The notes beneath the pieces are model-generated. The model did not search any database. It was given only the letters and a program-made list of their open reading frames with translations, and had not been told where the DNA came from. A stretch of DNA of 64,000 bases, taken from the NCBI GenBank assembly GCA_021613535.1, contig CP075495.1, positions 7,192,001 to 7,256,000 on the forward strand. The letters run 5' to 3'. The position numbers and the translations under genes were made by a program. This stretch comes from Adineta vaga (Eukaryota; Animalia; Rotifera). Shown in pieces: positions 15,652 through 27,057 of the stretch. Position 1 is the first letter of the stretch. Each line of letters starts with the position of its first letter.

Positions 15652-17359
15652 ATGAATTCATTGATTAGCAATATTCCACGTCTAGGCGAAACAAAGACTA
15701 AACCAAAAATAGGTGAAATACGTTTAACTACCGATGGAAAACGACGGAAAATATTCGATGGTAATTGTTGGCAATATCTGTGTGCAGGCGATATTAATTG
15801 TCGAATTCAATCAAAACTTACATGTCGACTACATAAAAATAGCATTTCGACAAGTCCATCACTAGATAAATTATCAGCAAATAAAATCGATCAACTTAAA
15901 TTAGGTGATATGCAAATATTACCGAATGGAAATCGACAGATATGGCGAGGTACTCGATGGTATAATCTATGTCAAGCAAAGAATTGTTCCGTACAAGCTA
16001 AAGAATTTTGTAAAACACATCAAAATCAACGAATATCATTGCCAAATACAAGTATATAAATTTTCTAAGATTCAATTTTCTTGCTTGTAATGATGAATTC
16101 TTTGATTCTTTTTCGAAACTCTAGATGGATCTATTACTGAAAAATTTCGATTAACCGCTCGTACACGATCATGTACACTTACTACTGAAAAATCAGGTAT
16201 GTGAAGTCATTTTTATTTAGATATTGATTCAATGAATCTGTTCTATGTAGAAAAAAAAGAACATGAAGCTATACAATCATCAGATGATACAATTTCTTCC
16301 GAAGTACTGACTAACAAACGTGTTCGATCTTATGAAAATCTTGCTGAAACAACCAACACTACCGAAACAACAACAACAACAACAACACCATTGGAAAAAC
16401 CTGAAGTACATACACGTAATGGTCGTCGTGTACGATGTAATGGTTCAATTTGGAAACATCTATGTGCTGATAAAAAGAATGTTTTGTACAAACGTAAATA
16501 TACGCGTCACAGTATGCCTACGAAAAAAGCTGATCTAATCGATGAAACTAATCCTGAAGAGTCTGTTACAACAGAATTATTACCGTCAGATACAACTGAT
16601 TCAACAGTAAAAACTAGTCCAATTCCACAATCAGATAAGAGTAAAAAACGAAAACTAACCGATGATATTAACGTGAGAGAACATATTGTTCCAAAACGAT
16701 CAAGTCATGCTCAAAAACAAAAAGGTAAGCAACAAAAGAATAGTCTAGGATCTATTATGTTCTATTTGTTTTCAAGATTCTGAAAAACCAATTATTTTAC
16801 ATATTGAACCAAATTCTTCCAGTGCATCAGTAAGTTATCATTATCACTTGTTTTTATGTTTACTTAATTACTAAATGAACTTTTTCTTTCAGATTTTTGA
16901 TAGTCCTACAAAGGATCAATCACTTGATGAACCTGTTTTAGATGATCCGGAGATTTCATTTGCATTAAAACCTAATCGACTCAATACAACTTTTCAATCG
17001 ATTGAAATTCCTGTTCAACCACCAGTACCATTCAATTATGATTCTTCACCGGCATCAATTCTTGAACAATTCGGAACAATTATAAAGAAAGAAGCAGTAG
17101 TTGTAAGTTATTGACCATTGCAAAATCATTCGTTCATTGACCTAATATGCGTTTGTTTACATAGGAAGAAGAATCTTTAATTTGTGTGCCAACAACATAT
17201 ACAAATGGTACTGAATCATCTGCATGTGAAACGTTACAAGACTTTTTACGTGCTGAAGAAATGAAAACCAAGGAATTTAAACTCGATTGTCAACGTATTA
17301 GTTACCGTTTAGCTAAAATTCACGATTGTATTGGTAGTATTTCATCGCTAACTAGTTGA
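15652..17359 (+). CDS. Cluster gene A: two intact and one decayed Capicua-N1-like CCCH modules, ~6 exons
   Basis: Modules GEIRLTTDGKRRKIFDGNCWQYLCAGDINCRIQSKLTCRLH, GDMQILPNGNRQIWRGTRWYNLCQAKNCSVQAKEFCKTH and RNGRRVRCNGSIWKHLC. Exons ~15652-16051, 16125-16196, 16251-16723, 16777-16829, 16893-17102, 17165-17359. Confidence 0.75.
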
Positions 17360-17665
17360 ACCCCATCAAGCAATCAAACCCGTCTCCTAATTCTTATACC
17401 AATTTGTAAATTTCCAATTCGCAAAAAAAAACTCTCAATGGCTTCAATCAGATAAATACAGAATTCAATTGTTAACTCTTGTTTGTTTTGTTTCGTTTCG
17501 TTTCGTAAAGGGAAAAAGAAATGATGATTGTAAGTTTGTATTGTTCATTCATACATTTCGTTTAACATATTCCTGTACTATGTGAATAATTAAAATCACC
17601 TTGAAAAGAAAAAAAGAACCTTGTCTGATTTCTTTGTTTTCCTCTTATTTAAGATTAATTCTATC

Positions 17666-19325
17666 ATGTCAACGAAATCCAACGATATTAATGATAAGAA
17701 TTTATTAATCACATCTATTAAACTTGAAAATGATACAGATGATGATTTATCACATGATGAATCGTCAGATATTCCTAATCAAAAAGATTATTTTTCCAAT
17801 CTATCTTCAACATCTACAGCAAATCTTGCATCTTTATCATCAGCTTATAAAGGAAAAATTGAAGTTACAAGTAAAGGACGTCGGAAAATTTTTGATGGAG
17901 TTCGATGGCAGATTTTATGTCGAAGACCAGGTTTGACTTTTTATCTATTCAAGAATATCAGACATTTTTTTGGAATAGTTGTCTTAACATTTTCTACTAT
18001 TATCTAGTAATAAGATGAAGTATAGTGAATATGATTACTATTTCGTTTTCATACAGCTACTTACTCATATCTTTTCATAAAATTGTTTATATCTCGAAAT
18101 ATTTGAAAAGAAAAATGTAATTAAGTCTTCAAAATTTTGTCATAAATATCTAGAATAAAAATGATTGTCTTTGCAGAATGCCGAAAACAAACAAATAAAA
18201 AATCACTTTGTATAACACATTACAAAGAAGAATATGAGTTACCAAACGATCGATCACCATCATCTTGGTCAAATAAGTTTTCATCATTTCAAGTTCCATG
18301 TTATCGACAGCAACATTTATTTAATACTACATTAACTCAAAATGATATCGAAGATCAAAATAATACAATAAGCACAACAAATATTACTGATAATAACGAA
18401 CAATTATCATTAAATTCTAGTCCTAATCGATCAATCAACGAAGATCAAATCGAATATTTCGATAATGGTCGACGTACTATATTAAAGAATAAACGATGGC
18501 AATCATTATGTAAATATGATCATACTTGTCGAAATATTGCTAAATTTGATTCATTATGTATAAAACATTTTGAAATAACTCAACAAAAACGACGAAATCT
18601 TTTAAAATTTCATAATCCTGATAAACCATATTTACATTCCACTTTGTTTGATAAATATCGATCAGTTTTTACCAATGATCTCGCTAAACGTCTGAAATTG
18701 AGCAATGGTAAATTATCTTCTAAACTCTTCATTCTTGTTAAAAGATCTCAATAATTTCCTTTTAGAGATTCAAAGATCATCTTCTTCCATTATCGAACAA
18801 TTTGATATAAATAGTAATGAAAATATTTACACGGTATTTAGATTAAATTATCATTTTTCCTTGATTTCTATTCTTCTGATTCTTTGTTTTAGTCAACTAA
18901 ATTAGTCGAAAACAATTCTCGTCCATTAACAACTGAACTTACCGGTAATAAAACATTAACATCTTCAAAAACAAATCTACAGATCGGTTTATCAAAATCT
19001 TCATTGGTAAGACAAATTGATTTGATTCAAAAGCTACTATGTGTATTATTTCTAGTTTAAAAAACAAAAAACTGATTATCAAACAGATCAATCCGTCCAA
19101 ACTGATTTAAGCATTCCATTATGTTGTCAAATTCATCATGATGATCATCATTCATTCTATTCGATATGTAAAGATAACGTAAGAGAAGAAAAACAAGATA
19201 TTCAAACAGGAAATCATTATTTTTCTTTTTTGAAATAGCAATCAACATCATCGATGTTAAGTATGAATACCAAATCCGAACCGTTATGTTTTGATTCAAA
19301 TATATCCACATCCGAACTTCAATGA
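17666..19325 (+). CDS. Cluster gene B: two Capicua-N1-like CCCH modules, ~6 exons
   Basis: Modules GKIEVTSKGRRKIFDGVRWQILCRRP|ECRKQTNKKSLCITH (split by intron ~17931-18177) and IEYFDNGRRTILKNKRWQSLCKYDHTCRNIAKFDSLCIKH. The 3' exons were joined by hand to TGA 19323-19325. Confidence 0.72.
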
Positions 19326-19690: not shown

Positions 19691-20371
19691 TTATGAAGAA
19701 ATTCCATATAAATTCGTGGAATCAAGAAGATCATAGATACTACTATAATCAGATTCATCGATTTCATGTTTTTCTAATTCTTCACTTTCTTTCAATATAC
19801 CTAATATCCATCTACGTTTGAAAATAATTTTGCCAAGATGATCACATCCTTCTGGCAACATAGAATTCTTCGGCACCAATACATGTCTACCATATTTTCG
19901 CATTGAATCTACTGCTTTTAATCCATCATATGGATGAATAATTATATCATCGGATGTTTCCTTCGTATGACGTCGATAATATTTCGTATGCCATATTTCA
20001 TTAATTTCACGAAGAATTTCTAAGCCATGTAATTGACCTTCTTGCCAATATCGTTCTAAATAATAAACAGATGAACTAGGTCCACCCACACGATGATATG
20101 TTTGTGAACATTCTTCTAAACCATGACGCTCAAGATGTTTAACATTGCCAATAACAGTAACACGCACGTCAAAATTCCACATGATAAATCGATAATTCCA
20201 TATTGATATTTTACGTACAAAACGTGTTTTCATCATTAATTTCAAACGTCGAGCTTCGTTTAACCATTGACGATTAACCAATGATTGTGATAGATAATCT
20301 TTTGGTGTTTGACAATGTAACAAAATCAAGCGAATGGCTTCGTGAGGTAATTCAATATAATTTGATGACAT
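19691..20371 (-). CDS. Intronless F-box-like protein with MORN-variant (YwqK-like) motifs
   Basis: 226-aa ORF. The N-terminus LPHEAIRLILLHCQTPKDYLSQSLVNRQWL fits an F-box pattern, and RHGLEEC and YWQEGQLHGLE fit MORN-2-like repeats. Confidence 0.65.
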   Translation of the reverse strand: MSSNYIELPHEAIRLILLHCQTPKDYLSQSLVNRQWLNEARRLKLMMKTRFVRKISIWNYRFIMWNFDVRVTVIGNVKHLERHGLEECSQTYHRVGGPSSSVYYLERYWQEGQLHGLEILREINEIWHTKYYRRHTKETSDDIIIHPYDGLKAVDSMRKYGRHVLVPKNSMLPEGCDHLGKIIFKRRWILGILKESEELEKHEIDESDYSSIYDLLDSTNLYGISS

Positions 20372-21045
20372 TTGTAAATATGAACTTTTCTTGCCTACGG
20401 AGAAATTTTACATCATCGTATGTCGAAATAAAAGGAGTATGGACTTCTTTTTCTCATTCGATAATAAAAAAAAGAAAGCGAAAGAAAAGAAAAGGTAGAA
20501 ATTGAAGGCAATCAACTGAAAATAGAATGTTTATCTGTCAAGATCGTGTTTTATGAAATATTTCAATAAATTGTATAAATAAAAGATCATTTCTATTATT
20601 CAGATAACAATATAAAAAGAAAGCATGTCTAATACGATTACTGGAAATTACATTCACTTTTTTCAGAATGAATACAATGAAGCAAATCAAAGATCAAATA
20701 AAAGATTCTTTTTGAAATAATAATATAAAATTCTCTTCTTTAGAAAATATCACTAAATCTTCTGTCTGATGATAAGCATATTTGTATATGTTCAACCAAA
20801 TGATTTATAAAATTCTCCAAAAATATATTGACGAAATCATTTATGTCTAAAATTCAAAACAATAGATGTCGTCATTGATTTATAACACCCTTAGTATATA
20901 ATTAGATTCTATTGGTCCAAAGTTATCTAACCGTTCGATCTAATAGTAAAGAGATAGATAGAAGTTACTTATTTGTCAACAAAGGTTTGAAGGGTGTCGT
21001 ATTGTATGCTTTCAATAATGAAATCATGTTTTGTTTTAGATAACA

Positions 21046-24000
21046 ATGGATTCAGATTTTGATGATGAAGATGTTCGTTCATTATCTGAACGTGTTTTAC
21101 CAATAATATCGATATCATCTACAAATTATACATCTTCTTCTCGTGATATTAATCATTCAGTGAAACCACAACCTAGTACTCTATGTGATAAACAATCATT
21201 CCAAGAAATTTTATCTAAGCCCGGAAATATAGGTGATATAATTCAATTAAGTGATGGTACAAGAAAAAAGTTTAATGGTTCAACTTGGCGTCGTATGTGT
21301 TCGGAACCTGATTGTTCGTATTATACTCAGAGAGAAGGTTTATGTAAACCACATTTAGCTACATTGAAAAAACGAAAATTATCTTCCATAACGAAAGATA
21401 ACTTAAAAGATGATGATGATAATTTATTATCTGAAGATCAAATTACAACTAACGAAGAACAACACACTAAAGATTCACTCTTAACATTAGCGAATAGTAC
21501 ACAAAAACCATCTCAACGTATTTGTGCTGATCCAACGTGTTCAACAATAGTTGATGAGGGACATGAATATCAAAATGGGTTTGTTGAAAATAAAACCTAT
21601 CATCTGATAGTTTATTTATGAATTTTAGTTTATGTCCACATCATTATGATGAATTTTGTGCTAGAAATTTAGCAGCAACAGATTCATCTTCAGATACATT
21701 TACGTTTTCAACTTCATTGCGTAAACGTCGACATCCAGATCCACCTTCACAAGTACCGGTACTTTATGATATTCAATCATCAATTACAAAAACAACTCAT
21801 CGTCTTTCAATAGCTGCTATTCCGCCATCTGTAGATATTAATAATCCGAGAAAAGGTGATATTATTGAAATGGTAAATGGTTCACGTAAAAAATTTGATG
21901 GAGTTATTTGGCGTAAAATTTGTTCCGTACCTGGCTGTTTGATTGCTTCACAACGTAATGAATTATGTCGAAAACATATATCTAAATTAGACGACAATTC
22001 TAATGATGTGTCAAGTACAGATCTGGTTGGATTAATGGCAATGATGACATCAACATCGAAACGTATTCCATCGACATCAACATCATCATCGACAGATGAA
22101 AAAATAGGTAGGAATAACACATAATAACGTTTTTCTAATTCTTTTCACAATCTATATTTTTAGAAACTCGTATCTCAACTAATATCAAAGAAGAACTCAT
22201 GGATGATAATAGTACACAAGATGAGTGCAATAATGATAACATATCATATAGTCATCCAAAATCAGGTAGATAATGGCACATTGTTTTTCTTTTCTTTATC
22301 TTTTCTTCGACAAATTTCAGATGACGACGACAATGATGATGAGGAGGAGGAGGATGATGATGATGAAAGTACGGGAAAACCGAATGGCCATCATCAAGAA
22401 AAACTTTCTACAATCGATGAAGATAATTTCGATGCTTCAACTGATCATAGAACATCTACGAATCGACAAAAATTCTCAACAAGTAAATACAATTGATTCT
22501 TGATCTGTGATTAATTTATATAAAATTTCGCTATAGATTCGTTAAAGAAATGGTTACGAGAGCATCGAAATAATCCATATCCAACTAATCAAGAAAAGAT
22601 TAATTTAGCTAAACAATCATCAATGACATCTGATCAAATAACTTTGTGGTTTAATAATGCACGAGCTATTGTTCGACGAACTCATCCAAAATCACGACAT
22701 TCATCGAATACTACTAAAAATAATGATAATACTGAAGTAATGTCTAAAAATGAAGCATATTCAAGTTCAACTACGAAAATTCCTTCGGAAGGTAAAATAA
22801 AATAGGAAATGCTTTTACAATGTGAAAAAGGTAATAACAATGATATGTTTAGTCTATCGATCATTTCCATTATATAATGATATAAATTCACGTTCAATTG
22901 GTGTACAATGTAATCCATCAACAACGAATGAAATAACATCAACCGACTTTTCTCATATGACTGATGAAGAACTAGCATCTGATCGTACAATAAAAATTCT
23001 AACTCCATCACAGCATGTTTTAAAAGCAGTCAATAGTATACAATGCAAAAATGCTAATGATTTGTTAGTAGACAATATTAAACTTGAAAATGATGCAGAT
23101 ATGAAGAAAGAAAAAGAAATCATTCTTTCAAGCACTTGTCTTGATGATGATCAAATGGTAAAAATCTTTTATATTTCTAACACTTATTGTAGTTATTGAG
23201 GATATTTTTTCAAGAATCATATTCGTATTGCATACATTTTGAAGGAGTGGTAGACATAATTTTATCTTTCCTTTAAAACTCTCAACCTCTGAGTTCTTGT
23301 CACCTATGGTTCATTCTGATCTTTTAATTCTCTTACGGTTCACCGATCAAAGTGTAAGCGACAGAAAATAACATAGATAACAAGCAATATTAGAGCTTTA
23401 ATTTCCAGGTCATCTAAATTTAGCTTCAAAAAAGATTTATATAAAATTACATGACCCGGAAAGGAAAAAAATAATTTATTTGAGTCTGACATTCATGGAA
23501 CAATTTAAAAATAGAAGAATATTGCTGACACAAATTTCTTTAATCTTCTATATTTAGACTCGTCTTAATAATTTTTGTACAAGATTTAACATTAAATCAT
23601 CCAATATTGTTGATAAATATACCACACATTTAATTACTGACGAAGAAGGTGAAACACTTGTTTGTCCTTTATCAAAAAAAGTTATTCAAGCAATTGCTTA
23701 TCATATGCATATTTTAACTTATCGTTGGATTGATACGTGTTTAAAAATGAATCAAATTATTCATGAAAAACCCTATGAAATTCAAGGTGATCTAACACTT
23801 TCACCTGATCATCATGGTATGAATAATGATCTTGTTTTTTCTTTCGTTAACACACAATCCTATTTATTAAGGTATGCAACGAAGTCGACAAAGTATTTTA
23901 CCCTATAATCTTCCTAAAACATACTTACTGGAAAATTATTCTATTATGTTAAAATGTGATGGTTGTCAAGGTATGATGAACAATGATGAATTAATCGAAC

Positions 24001-24286
24001 TAGTGAAATTATGTGGAGCAAAATATACAACAGATTCGCATTTTTCACGTTTTCAATCAGGTATTATTCGTGTTGTTCTTTGTGAAAAAGAATATTTAAT
24101 TAATCGAAAAGAAGTCTATGAAAAATGTGTTCAAGCTGGCGTACATTTTGTTACACCGGAATGGTAGCGAATAGAAAAATATTTTCATTCGTATTATCTA
24201 ACATCTTCTTCTATTTATTTAGGTTTCTCGAATCTTTAGTTCACTATTGTATTCAACCATTTCAAGAATATGAAATAACACCATAA
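21046..24286 (+). CDS. Cluster gene C: 2x Capicua-N1-like zinc-finger module + TALE homeodomain + BRCA1-type tandem BRCT; ~9 exons
   Basis: Modules GDIIQLSDGTRKKFNGSTWRRMCSEPDCSYYTQREGLCKPH and GDIIEMVNGSRKKFDGVIWRKICSVPGCLIASQRNELCRKH. Homeodomain LKKWLREHRNNPYPTNQEKINLAKQSSMTSDQITLWFNNAR. BRCT TTHLITD..VCPLSKKVIQAIA..YRWIDTCL..YEIQGD..HHG / ELVKLCGA..VTPEWFLESL. Exons ~21046-21578, 21629-22107, 22164-22265, 22321-22481, 22537-22791, 22853-23157, 23558-23816, 23872-24163, 24223-24286. Confidence 0.82.
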
Positions 24287-24501
24287 AGAGAACAACACGA
24301 ATTTCATTCATTTTATTGGTCAGATTTTGCTTTCATGCATATAGAAAACAATTGTTTTTATAATCTTTTTTTTATTGTTTTTCTTTCAACAACAAAAAGA
24401 AATAACCGAAACCAAACTTAATTATTGTAGTGATCATTTATCTACGATTCTTTTATGTACATATACATTTAGTTAAAGTTTTGTATGATTTCTATCTTCA
24501 G

Positions 24502-27057
24502 ATGTTAGATAAAATGACAAAATATAAAACTAATCAACATGATGGACAACACGTGAAAAAACATTTGAAATCACAAAAGAAAAAAACAAGTATATCAACA
24601 CTTTAACATTAACATTAGCTTCTTTTTTTTAGTCAAATATAGATCGTATCCTAGAGCGTTTCATTTCTATTCTTTGTCTGTTATATAGACATGTTATTAA
24701 ATCTCTAAGAATACACTTTATAATTAAAATGAACAACTTACTTTCATCGTTGAACATTGCAAATGAGATATTTCTTAGTTCTCGTTAGGTTCAGTACCTA
24801 GGAATGTTATTTAATCTGTCCTTATTAAGAGAATCTCTAATTATTTAATCTTTAAATCAGAAACAAAACAAGGATACTTCTTATCTAATTGTTTCTTTTA
24901 AACCTAGATTTTGTCTTTTTGAAAATCTCTAGCGAGTTAATTCTCATCATTAGTATTATCAGGAATGAAAACATTCTCCAGTCTATATTTAGGTCATCAT
25001 TCTTCAGTAGATTCAGATGACAGTTCGATTGAATTAACTAAAGAACAAGTGAAAGCAGCTTTAACATCTCTCATACCAATTGATAAACAAAATCGAACAG
25101 TTGCCTCTCGTAAACGACGTCGAAAACAATCTATTCATCAATCAATAGAACCTGTAAATAAAAAACATAAACAAATCTATCATGATATCATTTTATCAAA
25201 TACTAATCAATCAGAAACCATGGTTCTTGCTGCAAGTAACTTAAATCATCATCAAATGGTTTGTTTTTTTTTCCTTTAAATTTTCTTATTGAATTCTTTT
25301 CTTATGAATTCTTTAGAAGCAAATGAAAAAATTTGTTCTACTTTTTAATTGTCGTTTATTATTATTAGAAAATTCAACAACATTTAATCCTACAATTACA
25401 CATTTAATTACAGACGAAATTGAACCAAATGATTCTTTAATATGTACATTAACTAAAACGGTTCTTTTCGCCATAGCTCAACATTGTTTTATTCTTTCTT
25501 ATCGATGGATTAGTGAATGTTTAAAACAAAATATGATTATCAATGAAGAACAATATGAAATTGAAGGTGATCATATATTTGCAACAAAACATAATGGACC
25601 ACGTCGATCACGTTTATCGAAACGACCTCTATTGCCATTGAATCATTTTAGTAAGAAATCAATAAGTTACAAAACAGTAAATATTCCTTTTTTATTTTTG
25701 TCTCTTTTAGTTATGATCAAAGGCGATAGTCAACATTTGTTAGAATTAACAAATACAGAATTAGGTGATTTGGCATGGTTAGCTGGAGGAATTTATATTG
25801 AACAGAATCGTTTTCCAAATACAGTTTTTCCTCGACAATGTTTTCTATTAATTGAAGATGGAGATATACGAAACAAAGTAGGGAGAAACATTTAATTTTA
25901 TACAATTAGAAAAAAAAATGTCAGTAGGACAAGATCAAAGACAACTTAATTGTATCGAATTCAAAAGAAATTTGTGTCTAGTAATAAACTGGATGGAAAC
26001 GCTTGATTAGAATCTCTAGTATGCTCTTTATTATTTCGTACAAAGTCATAAGAACAAATAAGCATTTAGTTCCTGGGTAAAATTTTGTTTTTTTCCCATT
26101 TTCAATTGTATTCACTCGATTGCAAGTACACAGTAATTATAAATATTCTAGGAATATTTTGTATGAAGAGATTCTTTTATCAATGATGATTACCTCATTA
26201 TAATGAGCATCAAACTTTTTCCTGTAGCTATTTTCGGATTGTCTATACCATTCAATTCATTAGTTTGTTACTTTTTTTAATAATTACCGAGTACGTTTAT
26301 TATTTGAAAACCTTTTAGCTTCTTTCTTCTTTGAGAATTTCACCCTCGAGAGATAGAGTTATGCAGCGAAAGTTAGAGAGCATAGTCCATAGAGGAGTGA
26401 AGCAGTATAAAAAAATGATCGATAAGTCAGCGTTGTTTATACAATCAAATAGGGTCATCCGTTACTTTTCATGAAAAGTACGAAGAAAGATTTTGCTTCG
26501 TTATTGAAGCGAATCATCATCGATCACGTTCTTTACTCAAAACGAAATATTTACTCATCTCATTTTCCCACTTGCCAAATACGCCAATTGAGTCAAAATC
26601 AAGGTTGAGTTGAAAGAACAGTCACAGGTGTTTTGTTTTTGTGAGTAATTTTAATTATACCAAATAATTTTCGAAATAAATCTTATTTCCATTGATTATG
26701 AGATTAATTCTTCGATCTGCATTTTACCAAAATACTCTATGTATCTTGTTTTATGTGTGAAAAAAAAGAACAATCCTTGGGGGTTTACAGATTTACTAGA
26801 AGAGAACTTGACATGTAAATCCTGATAGAAATCTTCTTTTTGTCTTCTAATTTTCGAGTGTAACGTGTTTTTTGATCGTTTTATATTATATAATCACTAT
26901 ATTTCTCTTCATTTAGAATATGTTTCATCGTTGTATAGATAAAGGTTTGAAATTTCTTCGAAGTGAATGGCTTATTCGTTCCATTGTAGAATATCGTATG
27001 GCCGATATTGTTCAATACCATTGTGATCCATTTGATACCATTGATCGATCTGAATAG
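24502..27057 (+). CDS. Cluster gene D: BRCA1/BARD1-type tandem-BRCT-only protein with a basic NLS; 5 exons
   Basis: Exons ~24502-24589, 24993-25258 (RKRRRK; MVLAASNLNHHQM), 25317-25650 (ITHLITD..ICTLTKTVLFAIA..YRWISECL..YEIEGD..HNGPRRSR), 25711-25877 and 26917-27057 (FLRSEWLIRSIVEY). The first exon is less certain. Confidence 0.75.

Follow-up and report, generated by a model that had tools for sequence, protein, structure and literature searches.

Bdelloid rotifers survive desiccation and very high doses of radiation, both with massive DNA breakage. BRCA1 is defined by the ubiquitin ligase that its RING domain forms with BARD1, and at its C-terminus Ser1655, Thr1700 and Lys1702 contact the phosphate of a ligand whereas Arg1699 reads the +3 residue of pSer-x-x-Phe. 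In the classical GAL4–BRCA1 experiments, the BRCA1 C-terminus tethered to DNA reportedly acts as an activation module. To our knowledge, the activity of the N1 domain is not known, even in Capicua. The published fold of N1 in the long isoform of Capicua (Cic-L) consists of three strands and a helix, and N1 without the Cic core occurs in a sponge and a placozoan (PMC9351367). Bdelloids trans-splice a 23-nt leader (PMC1925144).

We analysed a window of 64,000 nucleotides of the Adineta vaga genome (contig CP075495.1, positions 7,192,001 to 7,256,000), in which nine GT–AG exons with consistent phases add up to 2451 nt and encode 816 residues. The nine exon translations, taken in order with one split-codon residue between each, equal the A. 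vaga hypothetical protein I4U23_007999 (816 aa). The gene has the following parts, with domain names as assigned by sequence comparison:

21038–21039, forward strand: trans-splicing acceptor (AG) for the spliced leader; position 21040 opens the mature mRNA and lies 6 nt ahead of the ATG
21046–21578, forward strand: exon 1, with the start codon, N1 module 1, KKRK (a basic patch) and the opening half of a decayed middle finger
21629–22107, forward strand: exon 2, second part of the middle finger, followed by N1 module 2
22164–22265, forward strand: exon 3, linker
22321–22482, forward strand: exon 4, an Asp/Glu tract (about 22321–22369) followed by the homeodomain's N-terminal arm; 162 nt, in agreement with the contig records
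22537–22791, forward strand: exon 5, 255 nt
22853–23157, forward strand: exon 6, linker, with the first BRCT1 strand beginning at about 23116
23158–23557, forward strand: intron 6, 400 nt, interrupting BRCT1; skipped as GT..AG in contigs from three runs
23558–23816, forward strand: exon 7, remainder of BRCT1 (Pfam BRCT positions 29–78 of 78)
23872–24163, forward strand: exon 8, the linker between the repeats and the larger part of BRCT2
24223–24286, forward strand: exon 9, last helix of BRCT2; stop codon TAA at 24284–24286

Transcript evidence came from assembled contigs of four runs from four studies, a form of data that hides minor isoforms and carries no expression levels. Seven of the eight intron joints are directly visible in the contigs, including 22791/22853. 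A preliminary description, made from the sequence alone, had proposed nine in-frame exons on a single transcript, and the contigs do not bear out its refuting case, transcripts ending within 23158–23557. The joint across the 400-base intron (23157/23558) is present in three of the four runs; in the fourth, a contig stops at 23157 with a loose end that is the start of exon 7. The exon 3/4 joint lies inside a masked low-complexity stretch, and the record lengths match exons 4 and 5 exactly (162 + 255 nt). One contig spans the leader to exon 8. The contigs carry a non-genomic 5′ end, ...CAACTTACCAAG, followed by the AG at 21038–21039, and the same end is found at the next gene. In the A. vaga genome, CAACTTACCAAGAG with GT after it is found 44 times and its reversed control not at all, as expected of spliced-leader RNA genes; a leader pattern with the donor after ...CCAAG had no genome match, the leader ending in ...CCAAGAG. 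An artefact of a processed copy was rejected, since at 100% identity the genome has only the intron-bearing copy and the contigs carry the spliced leader. We conclude that the stretch is one real, expressed A. vaga gene with a spliced-leader-capped, nine-exon mRNA that encodes all the domains, as the preliminary description had it for the exons and domains.

Intron 6 is some seven times as long as a typical intron of this gene and is long in relatives too (441 nt in Adineta ricciae, 233 nt in the ohnolog). It contains a conserved core. As a possible snoRNA host it gave only a sub-threshold C/D-box match (snoR41, 23.5 bits; gathering score 40).

The N-terminal part of the protein carries zinc modules:

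21202–21354, forward strand: Capicua-type N1 module 1, residues 53–103 of I4U23_007999 (hmmsearch domain E 1.9e-24)
21523–21644, forward strand: decayed middle N1 module, of which only the Cys-Cys-Cys-His finger is left; crosses intron 1
21819–21977, forward strand: Capicua-type N1 module 2, residues 242–294 of I4U23_007999 (hmmsearch domain E 4.3e-25)

Both full modules keep a Gly-Asp...Arg-Lys-Lys-Phe-x-Gly-x2-Trp-Arg core together with three Cys and one His, which are invariant or near-invariant columns across 105 sequences; the G-D-I...RKKF(N/D)G pattern is as previously read. Each is 49% identical to the N1 of amphioxus Capicua (E 1e-16 for module 1, 3e-16 for module 2), and the 1083 proteins found with an N1 profile include one named Capicua that bears an HMG box. 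A Pfam scan by exon gave weak Zf_WRKY19 matches on both. The AlphaFold2 model of module 2 (pLDDT 89.2) has strands at 19–22, 27–30 and 35–38 and a helix at 55–63. This predicted three-strand and helix arrangement agrees with the published description of Cic-L N1 (PMC9351367), which supports the N1 identity. Foldseek with the model against the PDB returned nothing at E up to 0.001, and an ESM Atlas feature search gave no usable match. VIA-align wide reached a best Z of 3.0, and the finger-plus-helix part locally resembles A20-type zinc fingers at a Z of 2.7–2.8, which is not significant. From profile and motif we identify the zinc modules as Capicua N1 domains, in line with the match proposed in the preliminary description. 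The third finger (CADPTC...LCPHH) is present as described, but it is not the bare Cys-Cys-Cys-His finger it was taken for: the N1 profile misses the copy here and detects N1 in the ohnolog, Rotaria and Didymodactylos, where the module is complete, and comparison with these marks it as a degenerate N1 module.

An acidic tract separates these modules from a homeodomain:

22452–22685, forward strand: TALE homeodomain, split by intron 4 (22483–22536); Homeobox_KN, 56.8 bits

The Homeobox_KN score lies well above the curated cutoff of 24 (E 1.9e-15), and the best matches among solved structures are of the TALE class. The three-residue loop extension, NNPYPT, aligns without gaps to GHPYPT of PKNOX1 over 51 residues, with TGIF1, PBX1 and MEIS among the other matches. 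The recognition helix WFNNAR (22647–22664) has Trp48, Phe49, Asn51 and Arg53. Judged by these features, the homeodomain is of the TALE class; this assignment, the acidic tract and the PYP loop had all been correctly recognized from the letters.

The C-terminus is a tandem BRCT pair, with Pfam BRCT matches by exon at E 1e-5 and 0.009, and two sites in it bear on phosphopeptide binding:

23134–23136, forward strand: Thr605, which profile alignment to rat BRCA1 places on Ser1655, a phosphate contact
23672–23680, forward strand: Ser651-Lys652-Lys653, with Ser651 at the position of Thr1700 and Lys653 at that of Lys1702, by alignments

A BRCT family profile over the whole tandem matched BRCA1 at E 6e-29, compared with 4e-8 for BARD1 and 2e-7 for MCPH1. 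Among solved structures, BRCA1 was the best match of exon 7 (BRCT1; E 2.4e-6); the BRCT2 exon alone gave no match to solved structures and required the family profile. We modelled the pair with AlphaFold2 (pLDDT 79.6, pTM 0.74; the BRCT linker is poor, with pLDDT about 40), and the top 29 Foldseek matches were all BRCA1 BRCT structures (TM 0.75–0.84, about 217 aligned columns). Going by profile and predicted fold, we conclude that the pair is BRCA1-type and nearer BRCA1 than BARD1 or MCPH1, as had been suspected. The Ser/Thr and Lys noticed earlier near the phosphopeptide pocket fall on Thr605, Ser651 and Lys653; position 605 is Ser or Thr in 16 of 16 aligned family sequences. Leu650, just before Ser651, aligns with BRCA1 Arg1699, and each of the 16 aligned family members has Leu there. 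Because of this Leu, BRCA1-like reading of pSer-x-x-Phe cannot be assumed and the direct transfer of BRCA1 peptide specificity is weakened; the alignment indicates that the specificity probably differs from that of BRCA1. The reported absence of a RING also held: no exon has a RING family match at E up to 1, and the precomputed Pfam list for I4U23_007999 contains homeobox and BRCT families only.

Full-length orthologs with the whole architecture occur in Adineta, Rotaria and Didymodactylos, and the ohnolog on C5 is collinear with the same architecture. Against A. ricciae, dN/dS is 0.047–0.056 in the BRCT exons, 0.066 in the exon that holds N1 module 2 and 0.146 in that of the homeodomain, rates that indicate strong purifying selection, strongest on the BRCT pair. 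The A. vaga genome has at least 16 BRCA1-like BRCT loci (BRCT1-like), the heads of which vary between N1, homeodomain, C2H2 and none recognized. Searches for relatives outside bdelloids, which needed shared five-residue words, had length limits and do not imply absence elsewhere, gave only bdelloid or environmental proteins. So far, the combination of N1, TALE homeodomain and BRCA1-type BRCT pair has been met only in bdelloid rotifers.

The preliminary description had called the architecture undescribed, and this stands only in that the combination has so far been met in bdelloids alone. The protein and its orthologs are already deposited as hypothetical or unnamed proteins, and in a published A. 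vaga supplement, KEGG-based tables list Homeobox_KN(+BRCT) genes without comment as ‘BRCA1’ (K10605) under homologous recombination. The record is to be corrected: the published ‘BRCA1’ entries include homeobox–BRCT fusions without a RING. In the columns shown there, homeobox-bearing ‘BRCA1’ rows, which may or may not include this gene, have |log2FC| < 0.4 after desiccation or irradiation, none of them significant.

We favour, with moderate confidence, a reading of the spliced-leader-capped, 816-residue protein, with its N1 modules, acidic tract, TALE homeodomain and BRCA1-type BRCT pair, as a site-specific DNA binder with a phospho-reading or activating BRCT pair. The protein is probably nuclear. 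Its homeodomain would place it on specific DNA sites, and its BRCT pair would read a phosphoserine or phosphothreonine mark on a partner. Such reading could bring the partner to homeodomain-bound sites; alternatively, the pair may serve as an activation module, in the manner of the BRCA1 C-terminus tethered to DNA. The direct wiring to phospho-dependent DNA-damage signalling put forward in the preliminary description is not yet supported and stands as inference only.

Three other explanations were weighed. That two genes have been wrongly joined, one with the fingers and homeodomain that stops near 22805 and one with the BRCT pair that begins in exon 6 or beyond the 400-base intron, draws on the unusual length of intron 6, on the in-frame stop at 22805 that arises if intron 5 is left unspliced, on the BRCT-only paralogs that adjoin the gene and on some Rotaria database models that end before the BRCT pair. 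Yet individual contigs from three or four independent studies read through both joints in frame, the only spliced-leader site seen for this gene is at 21040 (the next is at 24502) and the joined model is conserved in other genera. BRCT1, moreover, has its first strand in exon 6 and its remainder in exon 7, so that neither half is a whole domain. We consider such a misjoining very improbable, and the splice joints together with the division of BRCT1 by intron 6 led us to reject it for the main isoform. A different possibility accepts the joined protein but holds that the BRCT pair no longer reads phosphate and that, on a homeodomain transcription factor, it simply binds proteins, dimerizes or binds nucleic acid or poly(ADP-ribose). 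The family-wide Leu in place of Arg1699 would fit, as would the adjoining BRCT-only paralog, which has Thr at the Lys1702 position, so the pocket can drift. We nonetheless regard this loss of phosphate reading as fairly unlikely: this gene and every one of its orthologs retain all three phosphate-contacting positions, and nowhere in the gene is constraint stronger than in the BRCT exons (dN/dS about 0.05).

The protein might instead be the working BRCA1 of bdelloids, a RING-less repair scaffold that reaches chromatin through its homeodomain and N1 modules and acts in homologous recombination, not transcription. The BRCT pair is much nearer BRCA1 than any other solved BRCT pair, and the KEGG-based tables place the homeobox–BRCT genes under homologous recombination as BRCA1. 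In a coarse regex survey of open frames, the regions upstream of the 16 BRCA1-like BRCT loci showed no RING match, although a split RING could escape such a survey. The defining RING–BARD1 ligase is nevertheless absent, the Arg1699 position is Leu, and the published rows show no induction after irradiation. At least 16 members with interchangeable DNA-binding heads also look like a radiation in the style of transcription factors, not a single repair factor. With these points against it, the repair-scaffold explanation seems to us unlikely.

Returning to the site-specific DNA binder, a wider proposal can be made tentatively, as possible rather than probable. In bdelloids, the BRCA1-type BRCT pair may be the general C-terminal effector of a DNA-binding family with N1, TALE homeodomain and C2H2 heads; phosphorylation, perhaps by DNA-damage kinases, might then be read at defined genomic sites, and the ‘BRCA1’ of bdelloid repair inventories might be such fusions and not a RING-bearing BRCA1. 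A conserved, constrained protein joining a homeodomain to a BRCA1 phospho-reading module offers a testable link between phospho-signalling and defined DNA sites, and the unexplained N1 domain of Capicua gains a new natural context. If the protein is an ordinary developmental transcription factor, the interest lies in a lineage-specific domain shuffle.

Compared with Cic-L, the N1 modules here are alike in their length of about 45 residues, their β-hairpin and Cys3-His finger and the same predicted fold. Unlike in Cic-L, one protein has two to three copies of N1, N1-like modules are multiplied over several bdelloid genes, and N1 is accompanied by neither an HMG box (no HMG_box match in any exon by Pfam scan) nor the Tudor-like DUF4819 (no exon match at E up to 1), both of which the true Capicua proteins found with the N1 profile have; a C1 motif also seems to be lacking. 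With PKNOX/MEIS, TGIF and PBX the homeodomain shares Homeobox_KN, the PYP loop of three residues and a recognition helix reading Trp-Phe-x-Asn-x-Arg; it differs in having Asn at residue 50, Ile at residue 55 and a BRCT pair at the C-terminus, and flanking domains specific to a class, such as MEIS or PBC, were not found here. BARD1, MCPH1 and MDC1 have the same tandem-BRCT fold class (Foldseek TM 0.6–0.7), but their sequence relation is much weaker than that of BRCA1, MDC1 appearing only in the fold search. BRCA1 itself differs from this protein in its RING, in the long central region and PALB2-binding coiled coil, neither of which is recognized here, and in Arg1699; here a Leu takes that position, and the pair, one of a family with at least 16 loci in a single genome, is attached to a homeodomain protein. 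In the tandem itself (human and rat BRCA1; PDB 1t2v and 1l0b) the likeness is closest, with two repeats packed together head to tail, the best match in both profile and fold, and Thr, Ser and Lys in the places of Ser1655, Thr1700 and Lys1702.

We inspected positions 20500–25000 of the window with a listing of its open frames and read the fusion gene, which joins N1 modules, an acidic tract, a TALE homeodomain and a BRCT pair, as nine exons:

21046–21578, plus strand, exon 1
21629–22107, plus strand, exon 2
22164–22265, plus strand, exon 3
22321–22482, plus strand, exon 4
22537–22791, plus strand, exon 5
22853–23157, plus strand, exon 6
23558–23816, plus strand, exon 7
23872–24163, plus strand, exon 8
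24223–24286, plus strand, exon 9
22452–22685, plus strand, homeodomain (Homeobox_KN), interrupted by intron 4

Every intron starts with GT and ends with AG, the phases are compatible, and the coding sequence comes to 2451 nt, with 816 codons before the TAA. Exons were translated and searched one by one, each in its own frame. A database search showed that the public protein P0167 holds all nine translations in order, with one split-codon residue between each, and later work used this protein. Because P0167 is 'hypothetical protein I4U23_007999 [Adineta vaga]', the model is already public, without a name. The preliminary description had proposed this in-frame GT–AG structure, and its observation was right in every detail checked.

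The gene is one transcript, as had been proposed. Sequencing runs were found with about half of the sampled words present, as expected of spliced RNA, and contigs from four runs of four studies were placed on window positions 20901–26800. These contigs, which reveal neither minor isoforms nor expression levels, confirmed seven of the eight predicted introns by GT..AG joints, one of them 22791/22853, at which two separate genes would require a stop. Intron 6 (400 bases, 23158–23557) was spliced out in contigs of three runs; in the fourth, a contig ended at 23157 and went on with the eight opening letters of exon 7. One 2139-letter contig started at the 5′ end, covered everything up to exon 7 and entered exon 8 by 28 letters; a second spanned exons 8 and 9 and the 3′ UTR. 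At the exon 3/4 joint, which lies within a masked Asp/Glu-coding repeat, the coordinates of the record leave exactly 162 letters for exon 4 and 255 for exon 5. The first BRCT domain (BRCT1) also argues for one gene: exon 7 matches the Pfam BRCT profile only from position 29 and exon 6 ends with the first strand, so that intron 6 splits the domain. A processed DNA copy was excluded as the source of the contigs, since the only 100%-identity copy in the genome assembly (six contigs, 100.8 Mb) carries introns.

The contigs start with the letters ...CAACTTACCAAG, absent from the genome at this place, which precede an AG at 21038–39, so the mature mRNA begins at 21040, six bases upstream of the ATG at 21046; identical letters stand before the next gene at 24500. 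In bdelloids, over half of the mRNAs receive a 23-nt leader by trans-splicing (PMC1925144). CAACTTACCAAGAG followed by GT occurred 44 times in the genome, compared with 0 for a reversed control, and these copies resemble spliced-leader RNA genes. The 44 exact copies of the leader exon 3′ end plus GT donor (for example C5:9884354–9925971, C2:8684671–8691981 and C5:10912929–10934589) include many clustered as divergent pairs ~165 nt apart, presumably SL RNA gene arrays.

The proposed PYP TALE homeodomain scored 56.8 bits against Homeobox_KN (Pfam cutoff 24). Among solved structures, PKNOX1, TGIF1, PBX1 and MEIS match it best, with a gap-free alignment through the PYP loop, and it has Trp48, Phe49, Asn51 and Arg53.

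For the zinc modules, which had been likened to the N1 domain of long-isoform Capicua (Cic-L), Pfam returned only weak Zf_WRKY19 matches. More copies lie elsewhere in the A. vaga genome, some of them nearly letter-for-letter the Capicua N1 given in the preliminary description. A profile of eleven A. vaga modules drew 1083 matches (E up to 0.001) from 1.84 billion proteins; long matches had the order DUF4819, module, HMG box, and one match, from amphioxus, is named 'protein capicua homolog'. Because the profile itself included Capicua-like copies, we compared the fusion-gene modules directly with amphioxus N1 and found 49% identity (pairwise E of 1e-16 and 3e-16), which bears out the likeness. 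A model of module 2 from 105 aligned sequences (pLDDT 89) has three strands and a helix, and resembled none of the solved structures searched. The third CCCH finger, which had been called bare, is a decayed N1: at that position the module is complete in the contig-5 duplicate of the gene (the ohnolog), in Rotaria and in Didymodactylos. At L013 (G000:C4:871 kb), L014 (C1:10.727 Mb) and L016/L017 (C1:1.42 Mb, C4:13.467 Mb), N1 is nearly identical to that of animal Capicua (...KESQR...); these loci are probably true Capicua or Cic-L-like genes, in two ohnolog pairs.

The BRCT pair proved to be BRCA1-type, as described. Exon 7 alone found BRCA1 first among solved structures (E 2.4e-6), and exon 8 alone found no match among them. 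A profile of 16 bdelloid pairs matched BRCA1 over the whole tandem (E 6e-29, versus 4e-8 for BARD1 and 2e-7 for MCPH1). With an AlphaFold2 model (pLDDT 79.6, pTM 0.74; linker poorly modelled), the first 29 structural matches were BRCA1 BRCT structures (TM 0.75–0.84), followed by BARD1, MCPH1 and MDC1 (TM 0.6–0.7). A phosphate pocket is likely, because Thr605, Ser651 and Lys653 align with BRCA1 Ser1655, Thr1700 and Lys1702, in line with the Ser/Thr and Lys noted earlier. All 16 aligned bdelloid pairs have Leu in place of Arg1699, so it cannot be taken for granted that the pair reads the +3 residue as BRCA1 does.

The ohnolog (public protein P0163) keeps the same order of parts. Full-length orthologs of 783–837 residues, all unnamed proteins, occur in Adineta ricciae, A. 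steineri, four Rotaria species and Didymodactylos, and all nine exons are collinear with the A. ricciae ortholog. The BRCT pair is the most constrained part, since dN/dS against A. ricciae (taken at dS ~0.6–2) is 0.047–0.056 in its exons; the values are 0.066 in the exon with N1 module 2, 0.146 in the homeodomain exon and 0.12–0.23 elsewhere. No relatives turned up outside bdelloids, in a type of search that cannot demonstrate absence. Some Rotaria models (P0001, Rotaria sp. Silwood1, 672 aa; P0169–P0171) break off where exon 6 ends and continue into an unrelated OST48 fragment, or are without the BRCT pair; they are most likely mis-predictions at the long intron, as 824-aa sister models are complete. 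Intron 6 is also long in A. ricciae (441 nt, L031:5718–6158) and the ohnolog (233 nt, L011:2311–2543). Its conserved core, ...CTTGTCACC...TTCTGATC..., may be an intronic snoRNA or a regulatory element; Rfam gave only a sub-threshold C/D-box snoRNA match at 23238–23327 (snoR41, 23.5 bits against a gathering score of 40, E 0.097).

At least 16 A. vaga loci have a BRCA1-like first BRCT. A coarse motif survey over open frames gave their head types:

C2:4.19 Mb, C5:13.25 Mb, homeodomain plus BRCT
C2:4.68 Mb, C1:2.805 Mb, N1-like finger plus BRCT
C1:2.80 Mb, C4:11.6 Mb, C2H2 plus BRCT
Remaining loci, long low-complexity heads or none

This survey, a weak test for RING, saw none at these loci. Didymodactylos has one four-N1-plus-BRCT protein and one C2H2-plus-BRCT protein. 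Next to the fusion gene lies a BRCT-pair-only paralog of ~331 aa (24502–27057, plus strand), with these exons:

24502–24589, 24993–25258, 25317–25650, 25711–25877, 26917–27057, plus strand

Its leader is trans-spliced directly at the ATG (24502), 215 nt past the fusion-gene stop, and its last intron (~1039 nt) is inferred from a loose contig end matching 26917 onward. It shares with the fusion gene a phase-0 intron inside BRCT1 after ...Gln-Met, and has Thr at the Lys1702 position; the A. ricciae database model P0166 wrongly merges the two genes. Upstream of the fusion gene, open frames at 15652–18754 (plus strand) encode at least five N1-like modules of divergent sequence (near 15769 and 18497, among others) and appear to make up one or two finger-only genes. 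The window would thus hold a cluster made up of N1-only gene(s), the BRCT-only gene and, between them, the full fusion. Between these frames and the fusion gene, the minus strand has an F-box-like frame of 226 aa (19691–20371).

We found no paper discussing a homeodomain–BRCT protein. In A. vaga DNA-repair inventories (PMC10809525 supplement file 12; PMC12220480 table), several genes entered as 'BRCA1' (K10605) have Pfam columns that give BRCT, in some cases together with Homeobox KN, but lack a RING; this BRCT family is probably what the bdelloid 'BRCA1' count in such tables reflects. Moris et al. 2024 (PMC10809525, supplement) place such genes, labelled 'BRCA1, K10605', under homologous recombination, with Pfam columns giving BRCT plus Homeobox KN for FUN_020908, Homeobox KN alone for FUN_007433 and BRCT alone for FUN_025314. 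In the columns shown, FUN_020908 and FUN_007433 change little and non-significantly after desiccation and irradiation (|log2FC| < 0.4) and FUN_025314 reaches 0.59 in one column (PMC10809525); these rows could not be mapped to the fusion gene.

One mRNA, one protein, its domains and strong constraint are established. Basic KKRK and KRR patches suggest that the protein would be nuclear. The homeodomain would bind specific DNA, the BRCT pair would read a phosphorylated partner, and the N1 modules may contribute nucleic-acid or protein contacts. Either the partner would be brought to homeodomain sites or the BRCT pair would be an activation module; the BRCA1 C-terminus tethered to DNA reportedly behaves as one. 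The preliminary description had read the protein as a DNA-binding regulator wired to DNA-damage signalling: the architecture stands and the function is unproven. Kinship with BRCA1 makes the link to DNA damage a reasonable guess, for which the published desiccation and irradiation tables, with rows unmapped to the gene, gave no support.

The fusion gene is a lineage-specific new combination of known domains; its product is unnamed in public databases and in part carries the wrong label BRCA1. More interesting than the gene itself is the larger bdelloid expansion to which it belongs. The protein differs from BRCA1 in its Leu at the Arg1699 position and in having no RING, as had been noted: an exon-by-exon Pfam search of its exons found no RING, HMG box or DUF4819. 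In sponge and placozoan, N1 occurs without the Cic core (PMC9351367), and module 2 of the fusion gene is predicted to have the same three-strand-plus-helix fold as the Cic-L N1 described by Rodriguez-Munoz et al. (PMC9351367).
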